The notes under the pieces are model-generated. The model was not told where the DNA came from. It was given only the letters and a program-made list of their open reading frames with translations, and made no database searches. DNA of 64,000 nucleotides from Dimorphilus gyrociliatus (lineage: Eukaryota > Animalia > Annelida): NCBI GenBank assembly GCA_904063045.1, contig CAJFCJ010000070.1, positions 95,496 to 159,495 of the forward strand, read 5' to 3'. How positions within the stretch are numbered: position 1 is the stretch's first letter; each line of letters begins with the position of its first letter. Of this stretch, positions 11,101 to 60,121 are shown in pieces. Position numbers and translations under genes: made by a program.

Positions 11101-11723
11101 AAGTGTACAATAGCTTGTATTGTGCATATATCACTTTTTCCTTTTGAATTGTGACCTATCTGCTATTCTATGTAAGCTTTTATTGATTTTTTTATTCATT
11201 CATAAAATATAGATTACTGTGACGGCTGGTAATATTGAGATATGTTGGAATTTCCCTGTCTTTTAAAATCATATCTGCAACTACAAGAAACACCAACAAC
11301 TGTAATCATTTTTGCTGTTGAATTTTATCATAGGATAGAATTATAATTTGCAGAAAGTCTTAGTATGTATTAATGTATTATATCAATTTATGTTTTCAAA
11401 TCTCTCTGTCTCTTATAAGGTGTATTATTTCATGTCAGAAATGACATTTTGTATATCAGTGGAGGGGGGAGGGGTGTGGCAATATAAATGTATGAGGCCT
11501 GTTCGCTATTTGCAATCAATTAGGGGTTGTAATCTGCAATCTGTGTAATCCAGGATTCAAGTATTTGCGGATTGCGTGGGGAAGTCTTCAGTAGGAGTGT
11601 GTTGAAGATGTGTTTTAAAGCACAGGACAGTCTTGCCAAAAAAGAAATTTCCGTATTTAAAAAGTCAATCGTTGTGTAAGAATGATGTGCTGTACATTTA
11701 ATTTAGTATTACTTTTAGGCAAG

Positions 11724-14700: not shown

Positions 14701-15929
14701 GATCTTGTAAGAATTTGGAACATTTTCATATTCAATCAGAAAATGACGTTTTCGAATATAAAACAATTTTTCATTCACTCTCATCATCTTCTAAAAACTT
14801 CCTTAAAGTTATCAATGTTAGCTCTGCCATCCAATCGGAGGCTTCCGGTTTGGCATTTGCGGAACTGCTTGACAATTGTAAATGTTTGGAAAATATTGAT
14901 ATAAGCTCAAATAGTTCAATTGGAGAAAGAGAATTTGAAAAGATTTTATTATCCCTAGCAAATTCATTGGCAAAGTTGAGCCATCTAAATCTAAGTAAAT
15001 GCAATTTGTCAACTTTAAACATTAAAACTCTTAACAAACTGCTGAAACAATGCTCATCAGTTGTTTATATTGATATAAGTTTTAACAAATCAGTTTATTC
15101 ACTGTTTAATTCACTTGTAGAATCTTTAAAGCAATCATCTGGTGTGTTTAAACACCTCAATGTAAGCAATTGCTCTATAACAAATGAATCAGCTCATGAA
15201 GGTTTAAATAATTTAAGATATTTTCCTCATCTGGAATTTTTGGATGTCAGTTCAAATGCAGAAATTGGTAGTGCTATTGCTAGATTGAAAAAATCTTTGG
15301 AGAATTCTAATTCATTGAAATATTTAAAATTCAATAATTGTAATATATCTAAACAGTTCAGAAGACGGCAGACAGTAAAAAATCAGTGGTTTCCTGCTCT
15401 TGAATATTTAGATTGTAGTTGTAATCCGGGTATTGATAATGATATTGGTATTATTGTCACCCTTTTGGGAAGATCATTTGAGACTCTAAAGTATATCAAT
15501 TTGAGTAATTGTCATATAACTGAAGATATTGGTAAACAGTTTGCTGTAAATCTTCAAAGATTTCAGTATCTAGAACATTTAGATTTAAGCTCAAATAGAG
15601 CAATTGGGAATTCTATAAATGATATATTAAGTTCTCTGGAAAGCTCTTCAGAAACAATGAAATATCTCAACTTTAGTGACTGTAAAATGACAGAAGAGTC
15701 TGGTAATTATCTGGAAAAGTATTTGAAAACTTTTTCCTCACTAGAATATTTGAATATCAGAAGAAATGGAAATGTTTGCAAGAGTTTAAAAAATATTACA
15801 AAATCTTTATTGGAACTATCAAAAACATTAACTCATGTGTATATTGATTTCTGCGGCCTTTCTACCTCAGACAGGCCTATAGTTGAATCCTTACTACAAT
15901 CACTATCTCTTGAGGACTTTGAATTGTAA
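11724..15929 (+). CDS. NLR-type receptor: death-fold (CARD-like) N-terminus, NACHT, C-terminal RNI-like LRRs; single coding exon (ORF open from 11682)
   Basis: Walker A IIVQGEPGIGKS, Walker B FLLLDGGDE, CRIPLLA, FHLSIQEFFAA, then repeated LxxLxLSxN/CxL units; 1415 codons without a stop in very AT-rich DNA. Likely ATG at 11724, just after an AG acceptor. Confidence 0.93.
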   Translation: MSIDSHNSRLSKKSAINYAFTKYYNEFAALAEKSYFFKVILYTYFIEGKKMDSLTLDYIKDVYEKEDKTEAIKMAWGYLKYEGIPQTVKVLKTFHESKELAERMSISWQTLINEVKQHHLTKNMNIQLLPFDENSKAKIQNIISPLEILKVNAETIFSTNSEKSNYNYKNFHNIFNTEFNKIIVQGEPGIGKSVQVKYLMNCWALNKWDDVLNDKLFLVIYIKNVLNNEDIFDSILKSNFPGDTTVTKDNIRDFFEEKQMRDVFLLLDGGDEIDKLKLLNENKEYCIQNFIDSSNCPIPTVVWCRNWKSIEILSTCDVAFELIGFNSDQLKKYFETNFINMPCDEFVYALNKGNGNIKSFCRIPLLATIIFYLYHEKKFEFEYDNLYTIYENAIELIFIKNGIELNDLTMETIYRQSFLCLADNRIGMKIDKNQLKSFHKVFKCFAQIFNNSDNPEELEIQYFHLSIQEFFAAKHIITKYMENRIQTSLYIDKQLKDKKVLNIYNTMNLLKEKDESIFKHVLLNSMILEKAFQLSDNIKSILTDDSGNNSKVQLTDETISYLILDLVIEKIKNSIQELILQKVKTNFKRLLLKISNTSMIKLKKIHLSIENFNHLVLNDAEVMKQFLVLLQNDTLRYFDTQRFHLNVIFENDVKCIKIGNRFNSFNISANRNLSNSNNKRMEIQDNGSKFKKMWQLLSITDGFDNLINEIIKYYSLTTFDIHEQYLSENQLKALTIMFSTFSQTLSNVKLNVGKLNESTAKILYSFMDSLTYLKSFSLTSSKSDSGTKCFIDKIMEYKRTSLESLKIKLLSYTSLECISLSGLLEKFPKLRYLEISGLNVTFANHEMNDILLDEIENICLENCFLNDKQAEIIVNKIHNNSNFDDLLRNRQLGDALIVLQRHFLDFNKTLRNISIKFSQRFTYMDLRGKVISLSNCHLQTIENVSSFDKNNVFQQSLGLRNFEESIPSLSIFKCHSSDKNNDCQQEILCSYLRSCKNLEHFHIQSENDVFEYKTIFHSLSSSSKNFLKVINVSSAIQSEASGLAFAELLDNCKCLENIDISSNSSIGEREFEKILLSLANSLAKLSHLNLSKCNLSTLNIKTLNKLLKQCSSVVYIDISFNKSVYSLFNSLVESLKQSSGVFKHLNVSNCSITNESAHEGLNNLRYFPHLEFLDVSSNAEIGSAIARLKKSLENSNSLKYLKFNNCNISKQFRRRQTVKNQWFPALEYLDCSCNPGIDNDIGIIVTLLGRSFETLKYINLSNCHITEDIGKQFAVNLQRFQYLEHLDLSSNRAIGNSINDILSSLESSSETMKYLNFSDCKMTEESGNYLEKYLKTFSSLEYLNIRRNGNVCKSLKNITKSLLELSKTLTHVYIDFCGLSTSDRPIVESLLQSLSLEDFEL

Positions 15930-17122: not shown

Positions 17123-18000
17123 TTATGGAACATAAATATTAGATGTTTGAACTAATAATTCATCTGCTAAAAGCCCTCCTAGTCTATAATTTTCCCAAAT
17201 TTCAAATATTTTTCTTTCTATCTCAATATACTGCTTTTTTTGGTATTTGATAATCTTCTTCTCAGACATAAGGTTTTCATAGATAATAACTAAATCAGCT
17301 TCTCTCTTCAGTTCATCAAGCAGCCAATAAAATGATCCTTTAGATGGTACTTTATTATTCATTCTATTGTGCCATCCTTCCACACTGTTATTAGTCGTTA
17401 TGGATAATCCATATATAGACCAATTCTCTGTTTTCCATATAGAGTTCATAATCCAAGTTGCTTCAAAATATTCCAACAAGTCTGCAAATTTTTCTTTTTC
17501 TGTAAGTTGAGATATCAATCTGTAAAATGTTGGAGCAATGATATGAGCAGGCAGAAAAGGTAAAGCCATCAGCTTTCTCATGTCTCTCCAGTCTTCTCCT
17601 TTCTCCATATACTTTCCAGAGTATCCAAGAAACTTGAAGGATCATAATTGTAAAAACAAACCTTAAAGGTAAAATTAAATGTTTTACCTGTATTTTCCTA
17701 TATATTGCTAGTGTAAAATGGAATACACATCCATGAATTTGTGATTCTGGATATATTTTGGACACAGCTCTCCACAGACCCATCTCAAAATCAATTGTTA
17801 TCTTCTCAGGCTGTGACATAAAAATAAATGCGAATGGAATATGTTTCATTTCACCATCTTTTTTGATATAGCTGTGTATAGATAAGAGCTGATAAAAAGG
17901 ATCCTTTACCATTTTAAATGTCCCATCAATGAACCAGTGTTTTGACTGACCAAGCAAATTAAGTTGATGGCTGCTACCAAAAATAAGAATTCTCTCTTTA
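17123..18000 (-). mobile_element. Mutator/MULE transposase with a spliceosomal intron (17687-17633)
   Basis: WFIDGTFK...DFE...GCVFH...RKLMALPFLP...TTNNSVEGWHN (D,D,E + CxxH). Removing a 55-bp GT-AG intron fuses ORF 17463-17957 to ORF 17123-17608 in frame; about 20 aa appear missing between FMSQ and PEKITIDFE. Confidence 0.85.
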
Positions 18001-24559: not shown

Positions 24560-25661
24560 TACTGTCCATGTTTTAGGAATACCCTTTAAAAACTAACAGC
24601 CATTTTAAAATGTCATCCAAATCATATAATATTTTTGACATTCTATTTTTATGTGGAATTATAAAAAACATACTTGTTTTCCATTTATTAAAACTTAAGG
24701 ATTGCAAAAATCCTTAAACATTAATGAATCTCAAAGATTATGATTTAGCTTTATTTTGACTATGGTGAGCCATATGAACAATGAAGAGAGGTTGGAAAAT
24801 TTAATCTTACCCTGTTCCAGATAAAAAACAAACTATCTGAGAGAAGAAAAATGGATACTGAAATATTGAATATTTGTAAAGGACTTAAAATGTCATCCAA
24901 TACTTTGAACAGTCTTTGTTTCATAGATTGTGATTTAAATGAAGAGCAAAGTAGAGAGATTGGAATGTTTCTCATAGAATGTTCAACAATGGAAACAATA
25001 AATGTATCAAAGAATAGAAGGATGGGTGATGGAATATTTAATATTTGTGAAGGACTTAAAACATCATCAAATTCTTTGAAACATCTTGATTTAAATGTTT
25101 CGGTGTACAACAAAGTATAATGATTGGAGATTTACTCAAACATTGTTCCAGAATAGAAACAATAAATTTATCTGTGAATATAGGGATGGGTAATGGAATA
25201 TTGAATATTTGTGAAGGACTTAAAATGTCATCAAATTCTTTGAACAGTGTCATTTTCCAGAATTGTAATTTAGATGAAGAACAAAGTACAATAATTGGAG
25301 ATTTACTCAAACAATGTTCTAGATTAGAAACAATAAATCTATCTGGGAATAGAACAATGGAAGATGGAATGTTGAATATTTTTGAAGGACTTAAAATGTC
25401 AACAAATACTTTGATCAATCTTTATTTTGAGGATTGTAATTTAAATGAAGAACTAAGTGCGGAGTTTGGAAATGTCTTAAAACGTTGTTGCAAAATAGAA
25501 ACAATCGATCTATCTGGTAATAGAAACATCTGTGGTGGAATATTGAATATTTGTGAAGGACTCCAAATGTCATCAAGTATGTTAAACAATCTCTATTTTG
25601 AAGATTGCAATTTAAATAAAGAACAAAGTACAGAAATTGGAAATTTACTCAAACATTGTTG
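24560..25661 (+). repeat. Tandem 171-bp (57-aa double-LRR) coding array, RNI-like, frameshifted
   Basis: The ggact(t/c)aaaa(t/c) anchor recurs at 24881, 25052, 25216, 25387, 25558 (171,164,171,171 bp); unit GILNICEGLKMSSNTL..L.F.DC.LNEEQS.EIG.LLK.C..IETINLSGNR; the 164-bp unit shifts the frame. Confidence 0.85.
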
Positions 25662-26491
25662 NNNNNNNNNNNNNNNNNNNNNNNNNNNNNNNNNNNNNNN
25701 NNNNNNNNNNNNNNNNNNNNNNNNNNNNNNNNNNNNNNNNNNNNNNNNNNNNNNNNNNNNNNNNNNNNNNNNNNNNNNNNNNNNNNNNNNNNNNNNNNNN
25801 NNNNNNNNNNNNNNNNNNNNNNNNNNNNNNNNNNNNNNNNNNNNNNNNNNNNNNNNNNNNNNNNNNNNNNNNNNNNNNNNNNNNNNNNNNNNNNNNNNNN
25901 NNNNNNNNNNNNNNNNNNNNNNNNNNNNNNNNNNNNNNNNNNNNNNNNNNNNNNNNNNNNNNNNNNNNNNNNNNNNNNNNNNNNNNNNNNNNNNNNNNNN
26001 NNNNNNNNNNNNNNNNNNNNNNNNNNNNNNNNNNNNNNNNNNNNNNNNNNNNNNNNNNNNNNNNNNNNNNNNNNNNNNNNNNNNNNNNNNNNNNNNNNNN
26101 NNNNNNNNNNNNNNNNNNNNNNNNNNNNNNNNNNNNNNNNNNNNNNNNNNNNNNNNNNNNNNNNNNNNNNNNNNNNNNNNNNNNNNNNNNNNNNNNNNNN
26201 NNNNNNNNNNNNNNNNNNNNNNNNNNNNNNNNNNNNNNNNNNNNNNNNNNNNNNNNNNNNNNNNNNNNNNNNNNNNNNNNNNNNNNNNNNNNNNNNNNNN
26301 NNNNNNNNNNNNNNNNNNNNNNNNNNNNNNNNNNNNNNNNNNNNNNNNNNNNNNNNNNNNNNNNNNNNNNNNNNNNNNNNNNNNNNNNNNNNNNNNNNNN
26401 NNNNNNNNNNNNNNNNNNNNNNNNNNNNNNNNNNNNNNNNNNNNNNNNNNNNNNNNNNNNNNNNNNNNNNNNNNNNNNNNNNNNNNNNNNN
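25662..26491. other. Assembly gap (830 N)
   Basis: Run of N beginning inside the LRR array. Confidence 1.
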
Positions 26492-26899
26492 CTCCCCTCA
26501 CACCCCTTCATTTATCTCTCCTAATGTTCATATGGAAAATTTATCAAAAATCCACTTTTAATCTTTCCGCAGAGATTTGCCAGAGCATGATACCTTCTAC
26601 CATTGTCATAATGCCTTAAAATCTCGATAACAATATTCCTTAACTTGATATATATAATATGCATGTGTGTGTGTGTGTAAACGCAATTGGTTTAAAAAAA
26701 AGAGAACATAGATATTTTAAGTAGGCCTAACTGCTATTCACTATGCTTTTATATTGATCACTCCCCCTCCTGGTTGTCTTGGCCACCTTAGTCATATGGC
26801 CTCCAGTATCAAAATGTACAGTAAATTTTTAGCTATAGCTAATCAGAAAAGTATAAACAAGCTTGTAGAAAAAATAATGCCTTATTGTAGTCTGGAAAT

Positions 26900-30240: not shown

Positions 30241-33049
30241 TATAGGATAGTCAGATTTGTTAGATAAATATAGCGCACAGAGAGAGACAACGCCTCGGTA
30301 ATGTTAATAGAAGTTTAAAGCGTTTCTTATAATAAGTGTAACATAACCCCAAAAACTCTTGTAGACCCCTCTAAGACGATCGATTATTGAATCATTGTTT
30401 AGTTATGACAAGTTGTATTTGACTACTAATATCTATCATCAAAATACATATAAATAACAGAAAACAACAAAACCTAAACCAAAAAGTTGGCTAGATAACA
30501 TCTCTTAATGGCTGCGTGTTAAAAGTTAATAATTTCTATTTATACTGTCATAGATTTATCGTGTTCGCTATTTTGTATGACGGAGAAAACATTTAGGTTG
30601 TCTATTGCGATTTCGCATCGAAAAATTTTCCTTATTTTTTTCAGCAAGTCCTTCGAACATGACCTGTGCCCAACCCAAATTTGATCTCAGATATTTAAAA
30701 TACCTACTTATTGCATGCATTACGTTTATTTCGCATATGTCTATATCTTGATTAAAATGCTTTAGTTTGAGTACTATATAATGGTTTAATTTTTAGTTTC
30801 CAAAAACTTGTAGTAAAATTTTCAATTCTGAATTTCAAATTATTGTTTTTCATATTGGTTGTTATTTTTATTGTTTTTTCTTCGCAGTCTGAACTATTTA
30901 TGGAAGTATTCAATGTTTCATAAAACTAAAAATTGAAATTGAAATGTCTATTGACAACGAAAACATCGAAAATTTCTGTTCTAGAACAATATAACTTACC
31001 AAGAATGTAGAGCGTTGACAATTTACAACTAAGTTGTAGACATTTTTAGACTATTTAGCGTACAAATTCGTATGTTTAGGATTAGAAAATTTTGCAAACG
31101 ATAAAATTTTAAAGGAATTATTTCAAAGAATTGATCTGAAAGGAAGTATTTGAAAAAACATAAAGCAAATTTTACTTTGATCAGTAAACAAATCAAAATC
31201 AAAAATTGTTCAATCAAATATTCAATCATTGAATCAAATCCTCGCTAAAAAAAATATACAAAGAGTTTATATACTATTTACTATTGAAAATTTTTTCACA
31301 ATTTAATTATATTCCAACCAGAATTTTTTTCAAAAGATTGGATAAATTTAAAATATTTTTAGATAAGATTCGAATATTATATTATATTTTCCGAAAATTG
31401 AAATGTCCTGCTCAAAGAAAAAGTTTTAAATATTAAATTAAATAATTAGGATATTGAAGTTAATATTTACTTACATGAACTGAAAAACTAAATGGGAGGG
31501 TAAAACTATAAAGAACTCGTCCACAATCAAGTTTTATTAGTTTTTAATTTATTAATATTTAAATTGCATCGACAAATTATTGAAGAGATGAAAGAGATAT
31601 AATTACTTCCTTCTGTAATAATTTTTGCAAAAAAGATGAAGTAAAGTAATTGTCATGCATTATATGATGTAGAAAAAGGAAACCAAATTTGTAGTAAAAG
31701 TCGAAATGTTTCGACTTCGACATCTGAGTTTGGTGATCCAAGCTATGGAATATTTAAATACCTAAATGTAACTTATACTTACTTATGTATACTTATACAT
31801 TGCAGTATAAGTAGAAAAACAAATTGAGAATATTCTAAAACTCAACAGAAAAATGATTTGAAAAAAAAAAATAAATTAAATACAAAAAGTTTTAACTGAA
31901 AATCCATTTTTTTATTTGCCATTTTGTTCTTTTGCAGACCTAATTATGGTGGGTAAATAATGATAAAAAAACTGGAAGTATATATTTACATTTTTTTTGA
32001 TAAAAGTTGTTACACTATTAATCTATTTTTTTTTTATGTGTCCAGGAGCAAAAGCAAAATCAAAATATACTTTGAATATTAAATGCACTTAAGGAAAAAT
32101 TCTCAAAATTCGAGTGCTCGTGTTTTCTTTTTTAAATACAAAGAGACAAAACGTTCCTTTATATTCAACTTTACATCTATAAACTATTTTGCAAAACACT
32201 AAATATTAGCACTAAAGATCTGAATTAATCTGAAATCTGAAATTAATTTGGTTTGTATTATTGTTCCTGAAACAAAGAAAGCATAAATAACATTTCGGAA
32301 ACTGCAAAGTAAAGTGAAATTTCACACCAAAATTTTATAAACTGGTAGAAAATGTATTTATGTATAAATTCTGTAACGCTAAGATAAATTTTTTGACATA
32401 GGGTTTCTAATCAGAAAACACATCTACTTGCTATTTTCCAAACTATATGGAAAGGAAAAGGCTAGCTAACTATCTAATTCGAAAGATTCTCTTCTAGCAA
32501 TTCCTAAGCTGTTTTTTTAAGATTAATAGAGAATAACAGATACACATTGAAAAATGGGACAACAATTGCACTGACACAATTGATATTCTATTGACTTCTT
32601 CATACGTAGAGTGAAGAGGAGTGCATAATTTTCTTTGATAAATTTTCCCATAAACTCTAAAGGTTTGGTTGAAACACCCCATTACGCAAAAGTTTAATGA
32701 ATGATACGGGCATTTCTAGGCTAAGGAAAATTTGGAGTCTTTTCAGATTATGAAAGGCTCTAATTTTAGAAACTACAAAATATAAAGAATCTTGTTAATT
32801 GTTAGGTTAAAAGAAGAAAAGAATGAAATATTTTATCCGAAAAACTATAGCAATTTTGCCCATATAGCCTTGAACTAAATAAGATATTAAGGATTTTTTA
32901 TCTGTTGCACAGATTACCATCTATTTGAGATAATTTTTTAAATATCAATGTTAAAAAGAAACTCTAGATCATGGACATTAATCACACATCTTTTTCTACT
33001 CCTTAATGTAAACATCGCTGATTACACTAGGCAAAAAACCCGCTGAATC

Positions 33050-33617
33050 ATCGCTAATCGAACTCTTCAAATAGCATGACAACTCTAGTTACAGATAATA
33101 CCAGCACAATCATGTGGCATAGTACATTCATTAGCGCATTTTTCAAGATTGACACTCTTTAGATTTTTAATGTCGGATCCAGAATATGTTTTAGCAGAAA
33201 GCATGTCATAATATTTTAACGTGGCTGTAAAATAACAATATTAAAATCACCTAAGTCTTTTAAGCGGCTTTAAGTGGAAGACAGAAATGTTCGACTCGAA
33301 GATATTTCCTTATGCTGGAGCATGGCTTACCAAATATTTTTTTTGATGCTGTAACACATTCTTTATGATTACAGGCTTCAGACATTTTTGACAAACTGAT
33401 AGTCAAAGTATAAAACTACCAAATTTGGTACTGGTAATTGTAAGCCTGTTTCCATAAAACATTTCCAAATTCATAGTTTGATGTTCACATACTAAACTGG
33501 TTTCTCAAACTGTTCAAAACATTAGAATAAAATTTCAATTTGTATTTCTCATTTTACCTGCAAAATGAAATTCTGTAAAAACATATAAAACAATGAAATT
33601 ATAAAATTTTTCAACAT
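33050..33617 (-). pseudogene. SUEL (rhamnose/galactose-binding) lectin + PAN/Apple domain pseudogene
   Basis: Signal-like MLKNFIISLF; LVCEHQTMNLE..GNRLTITSTKFG; MSEACNHKECVTASKKIFGKPCSSIRKYLRVEHFC; KTYSGSDIKNLKSVNLEKCANECTMPHDCAGI; stops and frameshifts present. Confidence 0.6.
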
Positions 33618-33625
33618 ATATTATT

Positions 33626-33831
33626 GGATGGGACAGAAAACGTCCACAAATGAGTGCTTTTACCCTAACGCTAACCCAGCCGTTAACTGTACCTAACCTT
33701 TTCCACTACCCTCACCCTTAGGGGAGACCCTCCTAAGTACAAATCAGTTCCTGTTTTCTTCTGCCTAACCATTTCTCAATCCAAATTTTTGTCTTGAAAT
33801 TTCTCATTTGTGGAGGTTTTCTGTCGACCCC
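33626..33831 (+). mobile_element. MULE-type MITE (family B, subfamily 1)
   Basis: TIRs gacagaaaacgtccacaaatg / catttgtggaggttttctgtc; perfect 9-bp TSD tatattatt (33617-33625, 33832-33840). Confidence 0.92.
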
Positions 33832-34429
33832 TATATTATTTATTTCTTGCTTTTGTGTTCCAGCACATAGATAGATCTTTAAATGTTTGTTGTCAGATCT
33901 GTTTCCTAGTTTTTTTAGTATTCTTATTTTATGACAGTATTGAATTATTCATTCATCTGTTCATCTATTCATAAATGTTGTATTCTGTCCTAACTTTATC
34001 ACCTGTTCTGGACCCATCTTGCTTATCTTTCCTAATTTTCCAAAGTTCTCATTCATTCATTTATGGCTTTTGCATTCTAAACTAGACAAAGTCTATATAT
34101 TCAGGAATAATAACGGCAATGATTCAGTTGACATCATTAATAAGTCGTTTACTTACTTAACCCTTTGGAATATAGTTGCTCACTAATCCATGATATTAGT
34201 GCAATTTTAATCTCTCTAAACTAATTTTCAGCTAGAATAGATGGAATTGGCATCTATCATCTTTTATATTTTATTATACTTTTTTTATTCAATTTGATAT
34301 ACTGTCAGGTGACTATAATTAAAAATACACAAATGTAAACTATTCAGTACTGCATAAAATGTTGAAGTAATATCTATCCAATTTTTAAAATTCACTGTTG
34401 TAGATCTGAAAAAAAACAGATAATAAATA

Positions 34430-34730
34430 TCACCATTTCACATTGAAAAGATCTGTAGAAATGTTTTAAAGTTGCTTAACAGAAAAAATAATGAAAAACC
34501 TTGCATTTTGTGAAAACTGGTTAATAAGCAAATATTCTTGTTAGTATTTATCATATTTTCAGTAGTATGAAAATTGATTGATAAATTCGTATTTATTGCT
34601 AGAGGTTTAAAAGAATGTTGACCATTTAATTGCTGTAATTCCAATATTTCTTTGTAACCCATTTTGTTTATTAGTAGAAATAGAAAAATTCCTCAGAAAA
34701 TTGGAAAAATACGCCAGGTTTAATGCTTTA
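34430..34730 (-). pseudogene. Class A GPCR TM2-TM3 fragment (family D), paralog of 42620-42900
   Basis: atgggttacaaagaaatattgga...cattcttttaaacctct shared with 42729 onward. Confidence 0.5.
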
Positions 34731-34949
34731 TTGAATACTGTGATCTGGGTTAATTTTGGGGTCGGCAGAAAACGTCTACCAATGAGAAATTTCAATACTA
34801 GATTATGGATTGAAAAGTAGTTTGTAAGACAAAAACAGCAACTAAGTAGTTGTTTGATTCTTTGAAAGGGATTGAGAAAAAGAAATTTTTAATTTTCAAT
34901 TGAAGTAAACGATAATCTTAAAATTTATTCAGTTACAAGTTAAATGTAT

Positions 34950-36450
34950 ATTTAGAGGCTATAGGGGTTCATTTATATATAGATAAATTTAACTCCAACA
35001 ACTTTGGAAAATTTTAAAGTTGTTTTCTAATCATTCTAAACTCATTTTCATCAATAGAATTTATGTTAAAAGATATAATCTTTAAAGTGTTCAATGAGGG
35101 AACCAACCCTGCACACAGACTTTCCAGAAATTTTTGAGAAAAGTATTGTCTCCAATTTACAGCAATTTTTAAAAAGCTTTGCAATTTCTTTATCAAACTT
35201 ATAATATGAAAAATCGATATTCTTCAAATTACTTGATGAATGCACGAGTTCATTAATAACAATGAATTAATGTTCGAGAGATAAATTGATTCTAGATTGG
35301 AACATTTTTTGAACAGTTGACCTATCTCTTCAAAGGTGTTTTTATTGGTTATACAGAACTTAAAATTGGCATTCTTCACTGTATTTGATGAATGAAATAC
35401 TACTTCACAAATAATGAATAGGCCAACTTGTAAATATTCATTTTCTTCTAGATTGATTGCTTCTATCTTTAAACATTTTCGGAAGAGCTATAAATTATAT
35501 AAATTATAATATAATTTATATGGTAAGCTTGTAAACTTAATTTATAATTTCGAAAATTGAGACTTTTTAAAATATATAATGATGAAAAAAGTGATTGATA
35601 ATAGAAAGAGCTTCTTTAGAATATCCAAAGTGCCAGGTACATCCTTAATTGATTTTTTCTATTTTGAAACATTTACCCAAAAGCATTCCAATCCATTCAC
35701 AACTTGCTTCACTTAAAAGCAATTCTGCTCTTTAATGTACTTTCTAGGTGAAAAAGTTTTTGGCAAATATTAAAAATCATTCGATTTCCTTCTAAATCTA
35801 TTGTCTTAATTTTAAAGCATATTTTAAATAGTTTTCAAATCTCTAAACATGTCCTACTTAGAATTGCAAAATGAAAAATTGATATTCTTTATAAAATATA
35901 TTGATTGTTTCTATTTGGGAGCATACTTTTGAAAGATTTTCAACTTGATGACAAGTGTCTTTTTGTAAATTGCAATAAAAAAATGATGTTTTTCAAAGGA
36001 TTTGATGAGAATGACAATCCTGAACAAATACTGATCAATCCATTACCCATGAAAGGGTTCCCTGTTAAATTAATTGTTTCGATTTTGGTACAATTTTCCA
36101 ACAGATTTCCCAAGCATTTGCAATCTTCTCTATTCAATTTAGAAGATTCCAAATGGATTTCCTTTCAAGTATTTGCAGAGGAGCAAATATGAAACATTCC
36201 ATTTCCAATTAAAAAATTCCCTTCCAGGCTAATTATTTCTAAGTTATGAGATCTTTTAAAAATTTGTCTAATCCTAGAGCATTCTTCTTTTTAATTCAAA
36301 TCTAAGAAACTGATATGCTTTAATGTATTTAAAGATAAGGAAAGCGTATCACAGATATGAAATAATCCACTATTCATATTCCCATTTCCTTCTAAGTTGA
36401 TTGTTGCAAATATTGAAACAGTGTTCAAATTTTCTAAAATGAATTCTTAT
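34950..36450 (-). pseudogene. RNI-like LRR pseudogene
   Basis: INLEGNGNMNSGLFHICDT; LNREDCKCLGNLLENCTKIETINLTGNPFMGNGLISICSGLSFSSNPLK; LESLCAGLVPSLNTLK; stops. Confidence 0.7.
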
Positions 36451-36564
36451 TAATTGGTCTGTACATGATTTAAGCCTATTGGAAATGTATTTTAGACGCT
36501 TATCATTGTACAATTTTCATGATATTTTATGCTTATACTATGCTACTATATACCACTTATTCAA

Positions 36565-37045
36565 AAACCTACGCTAGAAATACAATGACCATTTAGCCAA
36601 ACTCAGACCTTGTCACACTTAAGGTTCATCTTCAAATGCCACTTAAGGTTTGGCCAAGTTGTGATTGATGATCTTGCTTCTTTAGGGTTTTGCCAAAGTA
36701 TGATTAATTAGTTTGAACTTTGTAACATTGTTCCTAGACCACCAACTGTTTAGGGGTGATTGGATATTGGAGACAAACCTACAAGTATAAAAATCCTCAC
36801 TGTTTTACTCTAACTGTCTTACCTTAAACTGGAAAGATCAACTGGATACAACAACCACTGGGACAAGCATTCTACCCTTTCAACATTGAACGCTAGTTTG
36901 GTAACTTGGCAATCTACTATTACAAACTATCTACTCTGCTATTCAACTTTTATATTATTACAAGCTTAAGTATTTTATTTCAAATAAACAATTTAAATTA
37001 AACACTTTGTTTAAAGGTTTGGTGTAGAACCAGTACTGCTTTAAA
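36565..37045 (+). mobile_element. Repeat family A, longer copy
   Basis: aaaacctacgc...ggtttggccaagtt...ggtaacttggcaatctactattacaaactatctactctgc...gtagaaccagtactg homologous to 61460-62015. Confidence 0.75.
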
Positions 37046-37096
37046 GTGTGTGGATCATTTGGGAATGATTAGTGCCGTAAATAGGGAAGAAGCTGA

Positions 37097-37360
37097 AGAA
37101 AAACACTTTTTGTCTTTTGCGGTGTAGGAAATAACGGAGGGGATGGCCTTGTCATTGCGAGGCACCTAACAAGCATTAACTTTAAGGTGAAAGTTTATAT
37201 TTTGGAGTTCTCAGAAAATCGATCTGAAGATTTTGAAACCAATTTATTGAAAGCTTCAGGCTTTTGGAGCGCAAATACTCTTAGTACAAAATGCCGCTGG
37301 ACTTAGTGAAGATGACTTCCAACAAGGTATTATTAATGATGCTTTGTTTGAAATTGGACT
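37097..37360 (+). pseudogene. nnrE: Bacterial-type YjeF_N / NAD(P)HX epimerase fragment (Bacteroidetes-like)
   Basis: KTLFVFCGVGNNGGDGLVIARHLTSINFKVKVYILEFSENRSEDFETNLLK, then after a +1 frameshift LQAFGAQILLV...IINDALFEIGL (GNNGGDG and DALFGxG motifs); no introns. Confidence 0.85.
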
Positions 37361-37855
37361 ATTGAAAAAATCAAAAGCTTGATAACTATGTTTTTCGATA
37401 TAACTGTCTACTCTGTACGAAGCATCTGTTGCATCTTTAAGGTTCAAATAATCTCATGAAAAATTAAAATCCTCCATATTTAAAATATATTGACGTGGAG
37501 TTCCGTTCTCATCTTCTCGGAAGACAGTTCTAAGAATTTCATGTCGTTCAATTACTTGATGTCTGCGTTGAGAAGAGGAAAGTGGATAACTTTCAGCTTC
37601 TGGTGCTTTTTCATTACCACCTTCTTGACTTTCATATAGGGAAGAAGTAGTCTTTAAATAAGCAATAAGCTCCTTCTGATTTTCTTTTATTGTTTCAATA
37701 GTTTCAGAAGCAATATCTTCTGAAAATAGAGATATCCAAATCCGTGTGTCTACGTTTGCAAAGATGGTAACAGTCTCGTTTTGTTGTGTAAATTGAATTT
37801 TTTCTAATATCGGGTGGCATTTAAGTAACAAAATATCTGGTATTTCTTTTATCAT
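37360..37855 (-). pseudogene. Bacterial NRPS fragment (N-terminal docking region + condensation domain start)
   Basis: IETIKENQKELIAYLK...KAPEAESYPLSSSQRR|HQVIERHEILRTVFREDENGTPRQYIL...FS*DYLNLKD...YIEKHSYQAFD: YPLSxxQ and RHExLRTxF C-domain motifs, with an in-frame deletion and one TGA. Confidence 0.8.
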
Positions 37856-38107
37856 TTTAGTGATGTGTACATTTATTTATGTCTCCATTTACTGAAATAG
37901 ACAGTCTACTAATTTGAGGGTCAAATTGCTACCAATAAAATCTCCAGCCCCTAGCAAATCAATTATGACGAACTTCTGGATCAGCACTTGACCGATTCTT
38001 TTGAGGAAAGAACACTCAACTCCTTCCCTATTCCGGTAATATTTGATAATTATCATTCGTTAGACACTCCGACAGCGACCACTTGCTATGAAATTAGTTG
38101 CTTATTA

Positions 38108-38252
38108 AAGAAGTTCACTTGATTTTGATTTTCAGTAAGAATACAGACAGTGAAACCATGGCCTATCGATCCGTTTGTCATTATTTAAGAGCTTCAAGGA
38201 AGAGGTGTCAGAGAAGTTACCACAGAGATAAGTGTTCATGGTGACGTTGCTA

Positions 38253-38286
<34 letters not shown>

Positions 38287-38295
38287 CGAAGAATT
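38108..38295 (+). rRNA. 28S rRNA fragment (3' domain; non-functional)
   Basis: ttgattttcagta.gaatac...gaggtgtcaga.aagttaccacag.gataa...tttgatccttcgatgtcggctcttcctatcattg is the conserved eukaryotic LSU segment; about 20 nt deleted after gataa. Confidence 0.92.
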
Positions 38296-38409
38296 TTGTC
38301 TTAGTACGCTTCCAGTAGAATAGCCAGTATTGTTCTTGATTGTGGTGACAGTGTTACCCATACTGTCCCAAACTATGAAGATTACGCTCTGCCCCAAGCC
38401 ATTCTTCGT
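38296..38409 (+). pseudogene. Actin fragment
   Basis: [35 protein letters not shown] vs actin [35 protein letters not shown]. Confidence 0.9.
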
Positions 38410-40211
38410 AAATAAATTAATTTCGGTTGAAATTTTTGTATTCTATAGAAAAAGATGGAAAATGATAAAAAAATTAACATTGGACTTAATCAAGATTATT
38501 CTAGATTGAGAATAATTATTTTGAAGAGAATATATAGGGCACTAAAAGCATTATCTATCCTTCTGTTCCTTTCTTTCCGTTGCTTATTTTTATGTTTTAG
38601 CTATGTCTTACTTTATCATTTACAAATTCATCAACGAATCTTTAAAATGAGAAAGGTGTGAATGGCAGCGATACTAAGAGAACAACTATATTATCTGTAA
38701 GTCCTGAAGGCAATTGCTTTTTTCCATTTGGCGTTTCCTGCTGTCAGCTACAACGTCCAGTTTTCTTCTAGTTTTCTAAGGAATGAATGCTTTAATAATG
38801 AATGCTTTAATAATGATTCTTAAATAAGTAAAGCAACTTTACCTTCTCTTGATAATTTGGAGCTGAAGGAATAGATGGAAATGTACAGACAATAACTCAG
38901 ACGCATCTTTTTCTTTGTAATGAAATCATCTTTAAATACAGTTCTTTTTCCAGATTTCTTTCATTCAGATGGAGGTCGACTAACACACTGTCGTTTGGCG
39001 TCTCCCTAACAACTCAATCTCAAATTAACTTAATTATTTCTCAAAAAATTGCCAATCGATTATAGATAATGAAAATGACCCTTAAGCCTATAGCTATGGC
39101 ATGTTACAGGTTAATTATTTATCTATCGCAATTATAATCTATCTATGACAAATCAATCCAGGTAACCATCTAAACAGACAGACATCCGACCACCCTTATA
39201 CTCTTCCTTCAGCATGTTTCTCTAGGTTACATTCATTTGAAGTCTTTTTCTTTCTCCTCCCTAAAGAGGGGATTCTCTATTTCCAAACTACAAATGGAGT
39301 TTACTTTCTGGTAGGAAACTTTGTTGGGGACCATTTCAATCTTCTGATCTAGCTTTGACAAAGGCCAAACCTGTGTAAAGTTCTCCCAACTAAAACACTC
39401 GTCTGTTATTTTAGAAGAAAAATGTCTGGTTCATCTCGCCTATTTCCTCTTCCTTTACTCTAAAATGGTGTCGCAAATATGCTAAACATCTAGCAAAAGT
39501 AGGATTTGATCCTTTGATTAAGAAGGATTGAAGAGGATAGAAGCCAAATTTCTTTTTTTATTAACTAGGAAATTCAGCGAAATTGAATGCGGCGAATTTC
39601 CATTCTGTTCTAAAAAGTCACACAAACACCTTACTGTTGTAAAGGTGAAATGCTCTGTACATTCTTATTTATAAACGAAAAGTCTATTCCTAAAAAGGAT
39701 CAACTATGCCCAACCGCTTTTCAATTCTACAGCAGGTGGTAACAGCACACTGAAATTGAATTACCCCGGTTAGTCATTCGGGGATTGTAGTGAGTTTAAC
39801 TCAAGTTAAACAATTTCTCCTCTTCTCATTCTCTTTTTTGAAGACTGAGGTTATACTTTCTTTCGTCGAATAATCAATCACAGCCATTTCCCTTATATAG
39901 TGGAGGTTAGGGACACTTCGAGAATCTTCTCTGATCTCAGCTAATCAATACTGAATGCAGTAATAGCGTTTTATATGCTTATAATCAATAACATATTGCT
40001 TAGTAGACATGGAGGTAAACATCTTCAACAGTAGTTAAGCAAAATTCCTATCATGTTGATAACATCAGATTGATTGTTTTCATTATCAACAATTGGCAAT
40101 ATTAATTCCTTTTGAAATTTATTTATTTAATCTGGTTTAGGGAGAGAAGAAAAAATATATAAAAGAACATCTAATTAGTATTCACAGGGAAAAAAATTAA
40201 CTTTAACTCTC

Positions 40212-40533
40212 ATGGAGCTCACCAGAAAACCAAACAGATTCCCAATGGTCAAGGAACTAAATGATTCAATTTCCGGGTTAGGTAAAATCTGTGTTACTAT
40301 AAAAACGATTACCCCATACGAAAAGTTTGATAGTACTTCCTGGAAGCTAATATTGAAGATTCTGAGAAATGATAATGAAGAGCTTCTTGACTCTAGTAAG
40401 CACCTTGAATTTCTTCTACAAATCTTTAAGAAAAGAGGGACATTTCCCTTCTTGCTTTTGCAGATGATATGGTTATTATTGGATCAAAACTCGAAGAAAT
40501 TCCAGCTAACCTCGACACATAGTGCTGCAAAGA
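40212..40533 (+). mobile_element. Non-LTR (LINE) reverse transcriptase remnant
   Basis: EKFDSTSWKLILKIL (KAFDxVxW-like) and, in another frame, ISLLAFADDMVII; internal deletion; cut at 40534 by a MULE terminus. Confidence 0.7.
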
Positions 40534-41105
40534 GGGATCAACAGAAGTCACCCAGGACAGACGACGCTGAGAAATAGGCATAAGTCGCCCAGAACTGTGA
40601 TTGAAGTTGCCCACAGACAGAACTTGCAATTAAGAATTCCTCCACATCCTTATTAGTTCTAATTGCATGTTGATATACTGACCATTGTTTTAGTGACCAA
40701 GTATCATTCATAATCTGAGACCTGAACAAATCTGTCATTCTATATCTTTGTACTGAAATGCTCCCGTTTCTATTCTTACGCCCTCAACATATTAATATTT
40801 AGAATATCATCAAGGATAATGTTCGGCTACCAGAAGACGTAACAAACACGCCACCACAGCTATATTTATGTGTCGAATATGTAAGCAATTTGTTGCTGGC
40901 TTATTACTACTTTCCAGTCCACGGCTTTGAGCATCTACAAACTTTGCCTGGACCTTTTGACTTCCGGGGGGGATTGTAGATCCATTTCGGATATTATTTG
41001 TAATATTCGTTATTGTTTTATGCAGTTCTTTTACGGGTGAATTGAAGTCAAAGGAATGGTTAAAAACGATATGTCCGACCTCTTGCTGGATTTGTCTTGG
41101 CAATT
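40534..41105 (-). mobile_element. MULE transposase remnant with family-E terminal repeat
   Basis: gggatcaacagaagtc(a/g)ccc sub-repeats at 40534-40620 identical in design to 47489-47580; minus strand WSLKQWSVYQHAIRTNKDVE and LLRLLVAEH are MULE C-terminal motifs. Confidence 0.7.
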
Positions 41106-41299
41106 TGAAAGAGCAATAAATGAAGAGCAGGAATAGTTGTAAATAATAATAATTTATAATAATTTAATTGATGATACTAGAAGGGGCGTTGACATTTTAT
41201 TCAATAGTTCTAACAATTCACTTCGCTGTTGATGCCATCTTCCTCTTCTTTCCCGTCCTAGTCGCTGCGATCCTGTTTGCGGCGTTAATAAGGGTGAGT

Positions 41300-41658
41300 T
41301 CAAATGATTATGAACGACACTTGAAACTTAGCCAGCTTAGAATTTTTACTATTCATAAAAGGAGAAATGACCATACTAAATTGATACTCTTTGTCACTTT
41401 GTTTATAAAATTCTTGAGTAATGTTCTTCCCCCAGCGCTTCTTAAAGTGCATACGTGGTTTATCTTGGTAACCAAGTTCTAGAGTATGGAAGTAATTAAG
41501 GAACCCTTCCAATAGATTGTCCAGGATAGCTTTGTGTTCGATCATTATTACCAAATTACCAAATAACAAATAAGTGGGATTCATGGACAATGCAATTGGA
41601 ATTAGTGTATATTGTTGCGCCATGAATACATATGGCTTTTTATCAACAATTGTTTTAG
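41300..41658 (-). pseudogene. Uncharacterised ORF resembling the C-terminus of SAMD3-like transposon-associated proteins; bounded by a MITE
   Basis: NPTYLLFGNLVIMIEHKAILDNLLEGFLNYFHTLELGY; similarity by eye only. Confidence 0.3.
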
Positions 41659-41865
41659 GGATGTGGTAGAAAACGGTCATAAATCTATGGTTTTACCCTA
41701 ACCCTAACCCAGCCCTTGTTTTTGTCTAACCTTTTTGAATACCCCTAACCCTTAGATGGGACCCTCCTAAGAACATATCAACAGTTATCTTATTCCTCCT
41801 AACCATTTCCCAGGCTGAAATCTAACTTTCAAATATTTCATTTATGGCCGTTTTCGACCGGTCCC
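41659..41865 (+). mobile_element. MULE-type MITE (family B, subfamily 2)
   Basis: Ends ggatgtggtagaaaac / gttttcgaccggtccc; perfect 9-bp TSD ttgttttag (41650-41658, 41866-41874). Confidence 0.92.
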
Positions 41866-41964
41866 TTGTTTTAGTCGTATTGTCTAAAATATTTATGATA
41901 AAACTTTTGTAAAATAATTAAAAGGTAAAATATTTATTATAGAAAGTAAATAATGTTTTTAATT

Positions 41965-42080
41965 GGAAGTCTTAGATTTAACTTTTTATTTGAAATAAAC
42001 CATTTAAATTAAACACTTTGTTTAAAGGTTCGGGTAGAACCAATACTGCTGTAACTTGTGAACAAGTAAATTTGCCAAGC
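41965..42080 (+). mobile_element. Repeat family A 3' tail
   Basis: aaataaaccatttaaattaaacactttgtttaaaggttcgggtagaaccaatactgctgtaacttg. Confidence 0.6.
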
Positions 42081-42189
42081 AAGAGAAATACATTATTAAA
42101 TTTTATTTCTGAAACATCAATTGTTTTTGACCATTCTATATCCAGGTTTTTTGATTCTCCCTAAAAAAGAGGCTTCCATGTTAGTTCCC

Positions 42190-42500
42190 GTTTTCAAAGC
42201 AGCATTCCAATATTCTTCTCTCTTTTCATAGCTTGTCAGTTCAGTTCTCTAACCGTTAACTAGTTGTTTAAACTTGCTTGTTTAGAACTAGAAAATCATT
42301 TACTCAGCATTTTGCTAATTAATTTCTACCGAAATTACATTGATTAAGACTATTTGTGGACGAACTTGGAAAGTTCTATTTGTGTGAGTACTTTGATAAG
42401 TTGATAAATAATTGGAAAGGACGAATACTGTTCTGAAGAAACAGAAATTCCTACAATTACTATACAACAAAGATATTGTTCACAAAAATTTCAAGATTTA
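42190..42500 (-). pseudogene. LGR-like GPCR fragment (family C)
   Basis: gttctatttgtgtgagtacttt and cttgtcagttcagttct shared with the 23.4-24.2 kb and 49.0-49.2 kb copies. Confidence 0.45.
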
Positions 42501-42619
42501 TTTGTCTATTCATTCTGCTTGAATTTAATAACACTAGTTTTTTCTGCTCATGTTTTCTTTATATTGGAAATACTTAAAGAAAGAATTTTTTTTAACTCTA
42601 CCAAAATATTAAAGGTTAC

Positions 42620-42900
42620 ATGGCAACAGAAAATTATACCTTTCTTAGTCAATGCAGAAATCTGTCTTATTGTTTTTACTATCACTTTTTGTGGATTTTT
42701 TGTTTTTCTCTTTGCATTAATTTATAAAATGGGTTACAAAGAAATATTGGACTTTTAGCAATGAATTTGTCAACATTCTTTTAAACCTCTGGCAACAAAT
42801 ACCGGTTTATTACTCACGGAAAATTTTCATATTATTGAATATATGATAAATGTTGATAAAAATATTTGCTTAGCAACCAGATTTCACAAATTGTAAGTTT
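42620..42900 (+). pseudogene. Class A GPCR TM2-TM3 fragment (family D)
   Basis: LSLFVDFLFFSLH*FIKWVTKKYWTFSNEFVNILLNLWQQIPVYYS, then (frameshift) INVDKNICLA; paralog at 34430-34730. Confidence 0.5.
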
Positions 42901-43734
42901 TTTTGAGTGGAAAAAGTGAATTATTTAACTGATAGAACTTCCTTAATTATCTTTTGTTTATTTAGAATGAAGATTATGACATTTATACAACCGAATTTAT
43001 AGAAAGGACTCTTTAAAAAATTTTTTTTTACTTTACAGTAATTTTTATATATTTCAAATTTTCACTAAAACGGAGGAAAAGAGTTCTGTCTTGATCCCTT
43101 TTCATTCAAAAAAGTTAGATAATACTCAATTAAAAATTTTTTATGACATTTTCTGACTAGTGTTAGACAACTCTAGAACAAAAAAAAAATAGAGAATATT
43201 TCATAATGAGGAAGAAAAGACTTGAATCGAGGGAAAAAATCTTTGGATTAAATAAAAGATGGTTATCTAGAATATCCAAAGAACTAAATGCAGCTCGCAG
43301 TGTTATACAGTAAAACCTAAAGAAGAGGATCAAATGTCCTTGAATGGAAGACAAATCCGGGCCTGATCTCCCCAAGAGACAAGAGAAGTCTTATAATTAT
43401 TCAAAAGAAAAACTCTGTCAAAATTGACACTTTGTCTTATGGTTGTGAGGGTGATAACGGGGTGAATATATGATGGCGTGAATGTTTGACTGTAAACGCC
43501 ATCCATGATTCGTGTTCCATGAACTACCATTCTCAGTCGCGAACCATAGTCGCGGATTGTGCGTTCAAGAATTCACCCCTTGAAATATGTATATGTTGTA
43601 AGTGGGTCAAGTTTGCTTAGTGACCTTTAGACAGGCGTTGAGCAGTGCCTGATAGTCATATATAAAGGCACGAACAAGAACCCTTATGAGCCTATAGCTC
43701 GAAGCGAAAAAACCAAAAATAGATTAAAGACGGA

Positions 43735-44600
43735 TGGCTAACAAAGCATATCCATATATCTAGAACAAAAAAAGCGGACAGCAGCGACGTTTAATACAAA
43801 CCGCTTTATTCAGCAAGACAAGCTTATAAACGACTTATAACAATATTGCTTAAAAGCGCAACAAATATCTAAATATTTGTTAAATAAGTTCTGCAGTTTT
43901 GGAAGTTTTAAGAGTATATTAAATTTATTTTCATAAAGATATAAAGAATTATTTAATTGTAATATTTTCAAATTTAAAAATCTTGAAAAGTACTTTTACT
44001 GATTGAAGATATTGAGCAGTATGCTATTTTTAAAATTTGAAGTTTATGTAAATGTTTACATTTTATTTTAGATAAAATTGATATTTTTGTTTTTGATGTC
44101 AAGATCAATACGAAGTGGAATTTTTTTAAAAGATATATCCTTTTAAAGTGTGTTCACTTATATCAAGAATTTTAAGAAGTTTAATCATACTTATTACTTT
44201 CAAATTGTGAAGATTATTTTCCTAAGATTTAAATGAATAGCATTGTTAATTGTGATTTTTTCAATTTGGCTGAAAATGCAACTTTCCATTTTTCTAGAAC
44301 TCAACGATCCAAAAAAAATTTTAAATTATCAAGCCGAATTATTTCTGTAGAATTAATGATTTCGCTTAAATCTTTCAAATTAAAGTTACTTTTCTACAAT
44401 TGTCTATCACATTCTATTGAACTATATATGGAATATGTACAATTGTTAGGACAATTTAATTCGTCACTTTCCTCTCTACAATTCACAAATTCTAAAAGTT
44501 TCAATCATTTTTCTTTCATTTTTACATTTAAAATAATTAGAAAGAAAAAAATTGTCTAAATTTTCTTTTATAAAAGAAAAGAATTTAGTATAGATCTTAT
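43735..44600 (+). pseudogene. Possible F-box/LRR-like remnant
   Basis: TATA-like tatataaagg near 43660, ATG at 43735, LxxL-periodic fragments; weak. Confidence 0.25.
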
Positions 44601-46000
44601 AACGATTCTTTCCATCACAAATTTGAACAACTGATATGCAAAAAGAAATAAATTTGCACTTATATTCACCTTTCTCCACATTCAACATTTATACAATTTT
44701 CAAGATCCAGAAAAGGAGAATGAATTCTATTCCTTAAATTTCCCATAGTATCATAAATTAGTTTACATTGTGCAGAATAAATATTTCTTAATAGTCCTTT
44801 TGGATTGTATGACTGATATTCATTTCTTTTTAAATATTTCCAAGATACTTTATTAAAAAATTTGAGCACCTTTTTATAGTGTAAAAATAAGTTTGTTTTT
44901 TAGTCATAAAATGCTTGGAAAAGTCAGGAACTCTAATAAAACGATATAGACAACTAATTCCAACTTAAAATCTATTAACTAACATAAAAAAAATGGAAAA
45001 GATTCAGCCTATAATATTAGATTTACTTTTAAAAATTAAGAATATACTTTTATCTAATAAATTTTTTGAAAATAATGAAAATTCTTTACCAAATTCATAT
45101 TTTTTCTACCAAAATTGAAAACTGCCTTATGACGGGTAATTAACTCCTGCTTTTTTGCTAAGCAAGAAGATAGGACTTCATTTACTTTATCTTCATCCTC
45201 GGCATGTACTTCAATAATACAATGATAAAGTTTCCTTTCCTTAGTTCTCATTAACAGTTGTTAAGAATCTTTTAAATCATTCTAGAGTATTCTAGAAAAT
45301 ATTTCATTAGTAAATTGCTCAAATGCTTCATTATGTGGGAATCTTCAAACAAGTTTACTTCTATAATTCGACATCTACTCCACTTTTCTTATTCCACATA
45401 ATATCATAAAGAAATCTATTAATAGTTAAGTTTCTTCAATTGGAAAGTCTGATAGCTATTTTATTATCTTACCTTTTATTTCTTTTATTCAATCGAATAA
45501 ATTGCTGACTGTTTATTTTGATATCCAATATTAGGCCTCTAACAAATTCTATATCTTTATTAGAAATATCAAACTGTTTTCTGCATTCTTCTTTTAAATT
45601 ATTCTCATCAATAATTGGATTAAATACTTCAACAGAATTTTTCCTTTCATTTAAATTGAAATCATTTTGAAATCTCTCTTTAAAATCAGCAAGTAAAGGA
45701 GCATTTGCCAAATTTCTACAAAGAGCTACAAGAGAAATTAGAAAGATGTCCCTTTCTTCTATTGAAACGGCTAATTCTGAACTGATATTTCGCTTAAGAG
45801 ATCGAAGTAGTTCATTTGCCAAATAGCATGTTCCCAAACTATGTTCAAACTATTTTGAGTAGCAGTTGGATAAACCAAAAAACATGGGCCAAGTTGTTTG
45901 ATATACCGTAAACGTTGAAATTGAGGTGTGTCAATGACTTTAATAAGTAGAAGATGAAATATGCAATTTATAATTATGGATGTATTGATAGATATATTTC
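44600..46000 (-). pseudogene. SAMHD1: SAMHD1-like HD-domain gene (decayed, HD motif substituted) followed by RNI-type LRR-like sequence
   Basis: [41 protein letters not shown]...ERDIFLISLVALCRNLANAPL; after a phase-2 intron FLYDIMWNKKSGVDVE; EAFEQFTNEIF; LMRTKERKLYH; FNFGRKNMNLVKNFHYF: collinear with the SAMHD1 HD domain. Then MGNL...FLDLENCINVECG...QICDG. Confidence 0.85.
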
Positions 46001-49245: not shown

Positions 49246-49319
49246 NNNNNNNNNNCAGAACACAATGATTCGACTATATTTAAATATTTAAAAAAATAGT
49301 AAATTGTTTAAATTACATA

Positions 49320-59602: not shown

Positions 59603-60121
59603 TATATTAATTTACTTCTTTTTCCATTGATTCTTCTGATTTTTCTTAAGCTACAAGAGGTTTTTTAACGAATTCCCTCTCTGTTTGCTTATGAATTTCT
59701 GTCTTATTTCTCATTTAGGCAATCATTATCAAGATCATCCTCAGTTTCCTTATTATGCTCTCTCACTCAAATGTACAGTTTTACTCTAACCCTAACACTA
59801 ACCCTAACCCTTGTCACTTTTTGTCTATGCACATTATTCTGCTATCATTTCAACTTGGAAGTTCAACTTTAACCTGAGGATATAAAATTATATTACATGT
59901 TTTAAACTTATCTCTTTTCTCGGCCCTAATAACCTAACCATTCGAGTCTTTTCTTCCAACTTGATTTTGCAACTTGGCTAAAACTGCCTTCAAATAATTT
60001 TAAAACTAAAACTGCTAGTGATTATTCACATTCCTCATATTGTTAACTGGATTCCCTAGTAGTTTACTTATAACCCTGAAATATAGATTTCATATTTCTA
60101 AACATTTTAATAACCAAAAAT

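Follow-up and report, generated by a model that had tools for sequence, protein, structure and literature searches.

The 64-kb window analysed here is AT-rich (29% G+C) and contains animal genes for a NACHT-LRR protein, a trypsin, two rhodopsin-type GPCRs and a C-type lectin. Within it lies a patchwork of ~1.3 kb (37097-38410), in which two pieces of bacterial-type genes are joined to scraps of 28S rRNA and actin. The orientation is mixed: an Nnr/YjeF_N piece (+), an NRPS piece (-), a spacer, a 28S piece (+) and an actin piece (+). The first-pass annotation of this DNA had dealt with the two bacterial pieces and gave too little weight to their occurrence in a patchwork with 28S and actin scraps. 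Elsewhere in the window, the ORF of the NACHT-LRR protein runs uninterrupted over 1415 codons at 11682-15926 (+) and encodes an NLR-type immune receptor, in which the LRRs lie C-terminal to the NACHT domain. Two LRR-like frames, at 35900-36500 (-) and at 61957-63204 (+), hint that the neighbourhood is rich in receptors. Assembly gaps (N runs) lie at 25662-26491 and 49246-49255, and the long 'ORFs' at 25120-26619 merely cross the first of them.

The plus-strand stretch 37097-37361 is, as judged by profile searches, a frameshifted piece of a bacterial-type bifunctional Nnr/YjeF_N protein. Pfam PF03853 (YjeF_N) matched 37097-37303 (+) with an E value of 6.4e-13 and 49.4 bits against a curated cut-off of 24.9; the firm part of this match spans only profile positions 26-77 of 169. 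TIGR00197 also matched (E 5.9e-13, 48.9 bits), and its score lies under the whole-protein cut-off of 88.6 because only part of the protein is there. The plus-strand translation of 37097-37303 reads 'RKTLFVFCGVGNNGGDGLVIARHLTSINFKVKVYILEFSENRSEDFETNLLKASGF...', and the GNNGGDG nucleotide-binding loop is conserved as 'CGVGNNGGDGLVIARHL' at 37118-37168. A +1 frame change near 37255-37275 divides the piece into part 1 (37097-37264), which represents residues ~47-102 of the ~500 in the protein and in which the GNNGGDG motif is intact, and part 2 (37269-37361), which represents residues ~105-140. With a profile built from 58 bacterial Nnr proteins, part 1 was recovered at E 6.7e-24; part 2 was weak alone (E 0.33), yet among the window's 2724 six-frame pieces it ranked next after part 1, with which it is exactly colinear. 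In the Nnr alignment (A4), 'IINDALFEIGL' of part 2 aligned with 'IDALxGxGL', the conserved G of 'GxGL' being replaced by E. The colinear profile match and the alignment thus bear out the +1 frameshift that had been read from the letters, with the Nnr reading resuming in 37269-37361.

The Nnr piece covers residues ~47-140, and the first ~46 residues are missing. The Carb_kinase (ADP-dependent dehydratase) half was absent from the 64 kb, ten full-length Nnr tblastn queries matching 37097-37273 only, and tblastn detected no second Nnr or NRPS piece elsewhere in the window. A complete YjeF_N domain in one open frame is not present at 37097-37361. By sequence homology, the source of the piece is a gene for a bacterial bifunctional NAD(P)HX epimerase/dehydratase (Nnr, YjeF), from which the piece differs in being broken and in holding so small a part of the protein.

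Similarity searches identified the minus-strand stretch 37340-37855 as the N-terminal ~205 residues of an NRPS subunit from bacteria, comprising a putative TubC_N-type docking domain and the start of a condensation domain. An intact 133-codon ORF (37457-37855, -) holds the docking domain, a linker, and the 'YPLSSSQRR' and 'HQVIERHEILRTVFRED' segments of the condensation domain. It is closed by a TGA (37454-37456, -), noticed earlier, that lies within the condensation-domain frame, and the homology runs on across this stop; the continuation at 37340-37453 (-), which contains 'SYQAFDFFNSP', was colinear with bacterial NRPS loci by tblastn (E 1e-4). Residues 6-202 of a bacterial metagenomic NRPS N-terminus aligned to 37828-37328 through the TGA (tblastn, E 5.6e-21). 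Pfam Condensation (PF00668) matched the last 33 residues of the ORF at E 1.3e-6 and 27.8 bits, just below the cut-off of 30.6, and phmmer matched the ORF to short bacterial proteins with TubC_N and Condensation domains (E 1e-9 to 3e-3). A docking-only profile of 60 columns, built from 11 N-termini, matched ORF residues 40-71 (E 9e-8). TubC_N itself (PF18563) gave no direct Pfam match at E<=1; the closest relatives of the ORF carry PF18563, and its Atlas neighbours are TubC_N clusters with scores of 0.93-0.94.

An in-frame deletion of roughly 50 codons between YPLSSSQRR and RHEILRT had also been proposed. In the NRPS alignment (A2), the N-terminal motifs YPLSxxQ and RHExLRT are both invariant, and all five relatives hold ~35 residues between them, where 'YPLSSSQRR' of the ORF runs straight into the next motif, between R98 and H99 (37561|37562). 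The in-frame loss was therefore confirmed, but at ~35 residues rather than ~50. The catalytic HHxxxDG motif is absent: the NRPS piece stops at 'FDFFNSP' (about 37340-37355), and in relatives P0003 and P0005 'HHIISDGWS' sits ~25 residues beyond that point. The homologous source would be a bacterial NRPS subunit starting with TubC_N beta-hairpin docking, of which residues ~1-205 of >1400 are left in broken form. With the Nnr piece lacking its beginning and the dehydratase half, and the NRPS piece lacking HHxxxDG, neither could form a working enzyme; both scraps are relics of their source families, not working members. Large protein collections and the ESM Atlas list the broken 133-codon ORF, in identical letters, as a predicted protein, which is an annotation artefact.

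The two pieces meet with their truncated ends at about 37340-37361, perhaps overlapping by a few bases, in agreement with the earlier description of intronless fragments converging near 37360. Beyond the NRPS start lies a spacer of 249 bases (37856-38104), which showed no Pfam match, no match in 78 bacterial NRPS loci and no Atlas lead. It contains a 56-codon open frame at 37892-38059 (-), upstream of the NRPS start; we considered this frame as a preceding bacterial operon gene and rejected it, as it had no match in NRPS loci, Pfam or Atlas. A decayed eukaryotic 28S rRNA piece follows at 38105-38295 (+; Rfam RF02543, 52.8 bits, E 1.3e-11, model positions ~2716-2905), with an internal loss of ~20 nt and several changes at universally conserved positions. 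No Rfam family attained its gathering score anywhere in the window, and no tRNA genes were found in 33000-45000. The actin piece (38293-38410, +) is joined directly to the 28S piece, sense to sense, and carries an internal stop; it matched the Pfam Actin profile over positions 137-171 of 410, at E 1.5e-5.

On the left, the patchwork touches a copy of a high-copy, retroelement-like repeat, family A (36505-37086, +), which was recognised by self-blastn and in the repeat alignment (A1); the blastn match runs up to 37044, and a diverged tail follows to about 37086. Its 3' end carries an A-rich stretch, AAGAAGCTGAAGAAAAACA, at 37087-37105 (+), which overlaps the first Nnr codons and may be read as a degenerate poly-A tail. 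The Nnr piece begins exactly at this A-rich end, so that the earlier placement of the fragments directly after a family A repeat held in self-blastn. Five family A copies were found in the window by self-blastn (36505-37044, 61395-61993, 8342-8654, 9547-9649 and 41984-42060). Their 5' ends are cut at varying points and their 3' end is common, a pattern that is the hallmark of a non-LTR retroelement or a SINE-like companion. Summed contig depth over the copy reaches 57,000, compared with about 90 in single-copy flanks.

We also considered a single insertion into family A with a 72-bp flank duplication (36973-37045 and 41984-42060). We discarded this candidate, since the second copy is part of a longer related element, which occurs at 9300-9690 too. 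A 17-nt inverted pair (37080-37096 and 38016-38032, 15 of 17 positions complementary) brackets the bacterial pieces and part of the spacer and is probably meaningless. A telomere-like motif, TTAGGGTTAGGG, occurs 11 times in the window against 0.11 expected, at 9378-9436, 22449, 33663, 41696-41754, 50544, 57171 and 59784-59807; in two places it stands at equal spacing inside a repeat, just 5' of family-A-type tails. A scrap of a phosphodiesterase catalytic domain (PDEase_I; E 3.6e-9, profile positions 166-213 of 238) was found at 41309-41452 (-) in the open frame 41303-41692. It has changes at conserved residues, and could be either a decayed exon or another captured scrap.

To whom the two genes belonged was examined by searches against large protein libraries. 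With the Nnr piece as the phmmer query against 1.84 billion representative proteins, 1048 matches were obtained, the best at 55-65 bits and 55-62% identity. Most of the best matches are bifunctional Nnr proteins of ~500 residues, in which the matched part is residues ~48-100; the very best is a truncated gene in a bacterial MAG. One top cluster holds Roseivirga and Urechidicola MAG proteins, and the contigs of three other top matches carry PorP_SprF, Por_Secre_tail or a SusC-like receptor. Every relative that could be placed taxonomically belongs to the Bacteroidota. For the NRPS ORF, the nearest Atlas clusters are 100% Bacteria of mixed phyla, and the named relatives of the piece are a Pedobacter protein and a Chitinophagales MAG. 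A scan of genome contigs with the ORF returned only a generic internal condensation domain, from a Chitinophagales MAG, at 57% over 35 residues. A metagenome scan returned 78 NRPS loci, of which the top one reaches only 33% identity over residues 10-133; the best loci are AT-rich (30-37% G+C), and their flanks are filled with NRPS genes, so they yield no taxonomy. Tblastn against plasmids was uninformative.

These searches make it firm, at the level of sequence similarity, that the nearest relatives of both pieces are bacterial. No close donor was found: identity to the Nnr piece is at most 62%, and identity to the NRPS piece is ~30-36% in the docking part and 55-67% in the condensation core. 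A Bacteroidota affinity appears well supported for the Nnr piece and plausible for the NRPS piece, for which the donor phylum is only suggested because no close donor was found. The first-pass annotation had called the motifs of both typical of Bacteroidetes (Flavobacteriaceae) proteins; the phylum thus stood for Nnr and is suggested for NRPS, and the family was not established.

The same annotation had stated that best hits to eukaryotic NAXE or to an animal NRPS would overturn a bacterial origin, and we weighed the reading in which the pieces are eukaryotic, namely a host NAXE and an animal NRPS-like gene. The YjeF_N piece is indeed matched best, among solved structures, by yeast YNL200C and mouse AIBP (NAXE), at 30 bits, slightly over the 25 bits of Thermotoga Nnr. 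A eukaryotic NAXE origin had been considered from these structures alone, and it was overturned by the whole-library search, in which the top matches among all proteins are bacterial bifunctional Nnr proteins at 55-65 bits. The piece also shows the bacterial 'FSE(K/N)xSxDFxxNL' and 'DALxGxGL' pattern in alignment A4, and the TubC_N docking domain is found in clusters that are 100% Bacteria. A eukaryotic origin appears refuted already at the level of best hits, and we regard it as extremely improbable.

To judge whether the bacterial pieces are part of the animal chromosome, we compared two runs, X1 and X2, with the assembly over 34000-38255. All runs were available as contigs, as distinct from raw or long reads. 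The studies that support the junctions date from 2017 and 2020, and the 2020 study holds two species labels; this pattern fits the genome paper of that year, which sequenced D. gyrociliatus alongside Trilobodrilus axi (PMC7854359). The stretch 36700-38060 is present in two runs, each from a different study, the word shares being 0.83 and 0.76. An X1 contig covering 36969-37229 crosses from the host repeat into the Nnr piece with 0 differences at a depth of 117, and the X1 contig of the unique flank (34000-36464) has a depth of 90. In X2, one contig covers 37022-37229 and another 37203-38066, both with 0 differences, and the latter bridges the Nnr|NRPS and NRPS|spacer junctions. Two independent data sets therefore show the bacterial pieces physically joined to repeat DNA of the host. 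Besides the exact sequence, X2 contains another version of 37059-37229, ~9% diverged (15 letters changed and 8 gap letters); this might represent an allele, a further copy or a tract of conversion, and 37203-38066 is found in X2 in exact form only. The right-hand junction between the spacer and the 28S piece (about 38066-38105) was bridged by no listed contig of the runs. Run X3 (other species, same study) shares next to none of the words; it lacks the unique flanks too, so it is uninformative.

These contigs also bear on whether the stretch is an assembly chimera, or contaminating bacterial reads misjoined to animal sequence. X1 has no listed contig over 37266-37975, and this coverage hole would fit such a misjoin; the X1 contig of this part probably extends into the 28S core and would have been filtered out for that reason. 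The junction letters, however, are identical in the 2017 and 2020 studies, and the depth, in one run, is like that of the host flank, which is how the coverage check suggested in the first-pass annotation came out on contigs. The pieces are only 0.3-0.5 kb long and are joined as no bacterial genome would encode them. They also carry a frameshift, a stop and a 35-codon deletion, none of which would be shown by a live contaminant. Together, the junction contigs, the depth and the broken frames exclude a live contaminant and make a chimera very unlikely. The chimera or contaminant reading is thus largely refuted, and we give it very little credence. Both the decay, which had been argued to speak against simple contamination, and the proposed insertion of bacterial DNA into an animal chromosome were upheld by the bacterial relatives, the broken frames and the junctions seen in two studies.

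The reading that we consider likely is that the patchwork is non-functional foreign DNA in the animal nuclear genome, several unrelated scraps having been captured at germ-line break repair and having decayed since. Of the bacterial scraps, one amounts to about 270 bp of an Nnr/YjeF gene, the other to about 520 bp from the 5' end of an NRPS gene. Loose DNA scraps would have been present in the germ-line nucleus, the bacterial ones presumably from food or associated bacteria, and those of 28S and actin from host DNA or cDNA. They would have been ligated into a chromosome break by end joining, as 'filler' capture, and would then have drifted neutrally. Break-repair capture is suggested because the scraps are unrelated, 0.1-0.5 kb long, in both orientations and abutting without spacers, as end joining yields; the host 28S and actin scraps in the patchwork point to capture of DNA scraps rather than gene transfer. 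In yeast, end joining inserts extranuclear DNA at breaks and joins up to four fragments of mixed source, and rDNA is a frequent nuclear donor in such insertions (PMC11372161). By a count in the alignment, roughly 7-8% of the conserved positions in the 28S scrap depart from the universal consensus, host rRNA being assumed to equal the consensus; such a divergence is in keeping with a frameshift, a stop and two deletions within about 1 kb. Neither an empty-site allele nor an orthologous site was seen; the insertion is therefore neither dated nor proven to be single, and the pieces need not share one arrival event.

Alternatively, a reverse transcriptase might have switched templates onto abundant RNAs (28S, actin, even bacterial), with the chimeric cDNA then inserted. 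28S rRNA and actin mRNA are very abundant, both of their pieces are in sense orientation and abut without filler, and the A-rich 3' end of a retroelement-like repeat borders the patchwork. Against this, the NRPS piece is opposite in orientation to Nnr, 28S and actin, there is no poly-A behind the actin piece, and the patchwork lies downstream of the 3' tail of the repeat, whereas switch products would be expected at the 5' end. Bacterial mRNA would also need to reach a germ-line reverse-transcription complex. We consider template switching improbable.

The patchwork might also be cargo of a gene-capturing transposon (Pack-MULE- or Helitron-like), possibly present in several copies. The remnant of a MULE transposase domain was detected at 17463-17954 (-; E 8.7e-7), and the diverged version of 37059-37229 in X2 could be taken as a further copy. 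Terminal inverted repeats around the patchwork, however, were at chance level only; the best pair matched at 15 of 17 nt, and ~1 such pair is expected. The depth of the Nnr piece is single-copy, and the 133-codon ORF was found only once, on one 283-kb contig, in a collection of 15 billion proteins. Moreover, such elements capture host, not bacterial, DNA. Transposon cargo therefore appears quite improbable.

The locus can be set beside several known systems. Non-functional bacterial DNA in animal nuclear genomes includes insertions derived from Wolbachia, known from filarial nematodes and from insects, and bacterial pseudogene fragments of the aphid genome (PMC12693587, PMC2829048). The locus resembles them in consisting of short, promoterless, frame-broken bacterial scraps in repeat-rich animal DNA at host read depth. 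It differs from them in its donor, which looks like a free-living or associated member of the Bacteroidota and not an intracellular germ-line symbiont, and in that two genes without relation to each other meet at their broken ends, next to scraps of host rRNA and actin. In this joining of unrelated 0.1-0.5 kb fragments end to end, in either orientation and with an rDNA donor, it is like yeast Break-Ins (mtDNA, Ty cDNA, rDNA; PMC11372161) and mosaic NUMT/NUPT. Unlike yeast Break-Ins, it is a fixed germ-line relic in an animal and includes two bacterial fragments, and the break, the enzymes and any microhomology at the junctions are not observable here.

The locus thus represents a further, well-supported example of the known dead bacterial DNA in animals. 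It is modestly unusual in its non-symbiont, Bacteroidota-like donor and in its patchwork with host rRNA and actin, which hints at the mechanism of capture. Bdelloid rotifers carry bacterial sequences from several donors, including NRPS-type genes, near retroelements and telomere-like repeats, and many of these imports are intact, intron-bearing and expressed. Here, in contrast, there are only dead sub-genic scraps, and the telomere-like motifs of the window are not at the junctions. A bolder reading, which we hold only tentatively and consider rather unlikely, is that this is one germ-line repair scar among many, made of environmental bacterial scraps and host rDNA and actin scraps (possibly cDNA), in an animal with an unusually permeable, bdelloid-like germ line, and that the mechanism could be read from the junctions.

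By itself, the locus is a dead relic with no function. It offers a caution for gene annotation, as the dead 133-codon ORF is already held in protein collections as if it were a gene. Its value lies in clean evidence, proof against contamination, that DNA of free-living or associated bacteria, and not just that of germ-line symbionts, reaches the chromosomes of this animal and gets fixed there. Taken with further bacterial fragments of the genome, it could support a study across a compact annelid genome of how often foreign DNA is captured, from which donors and with what junction signatures.
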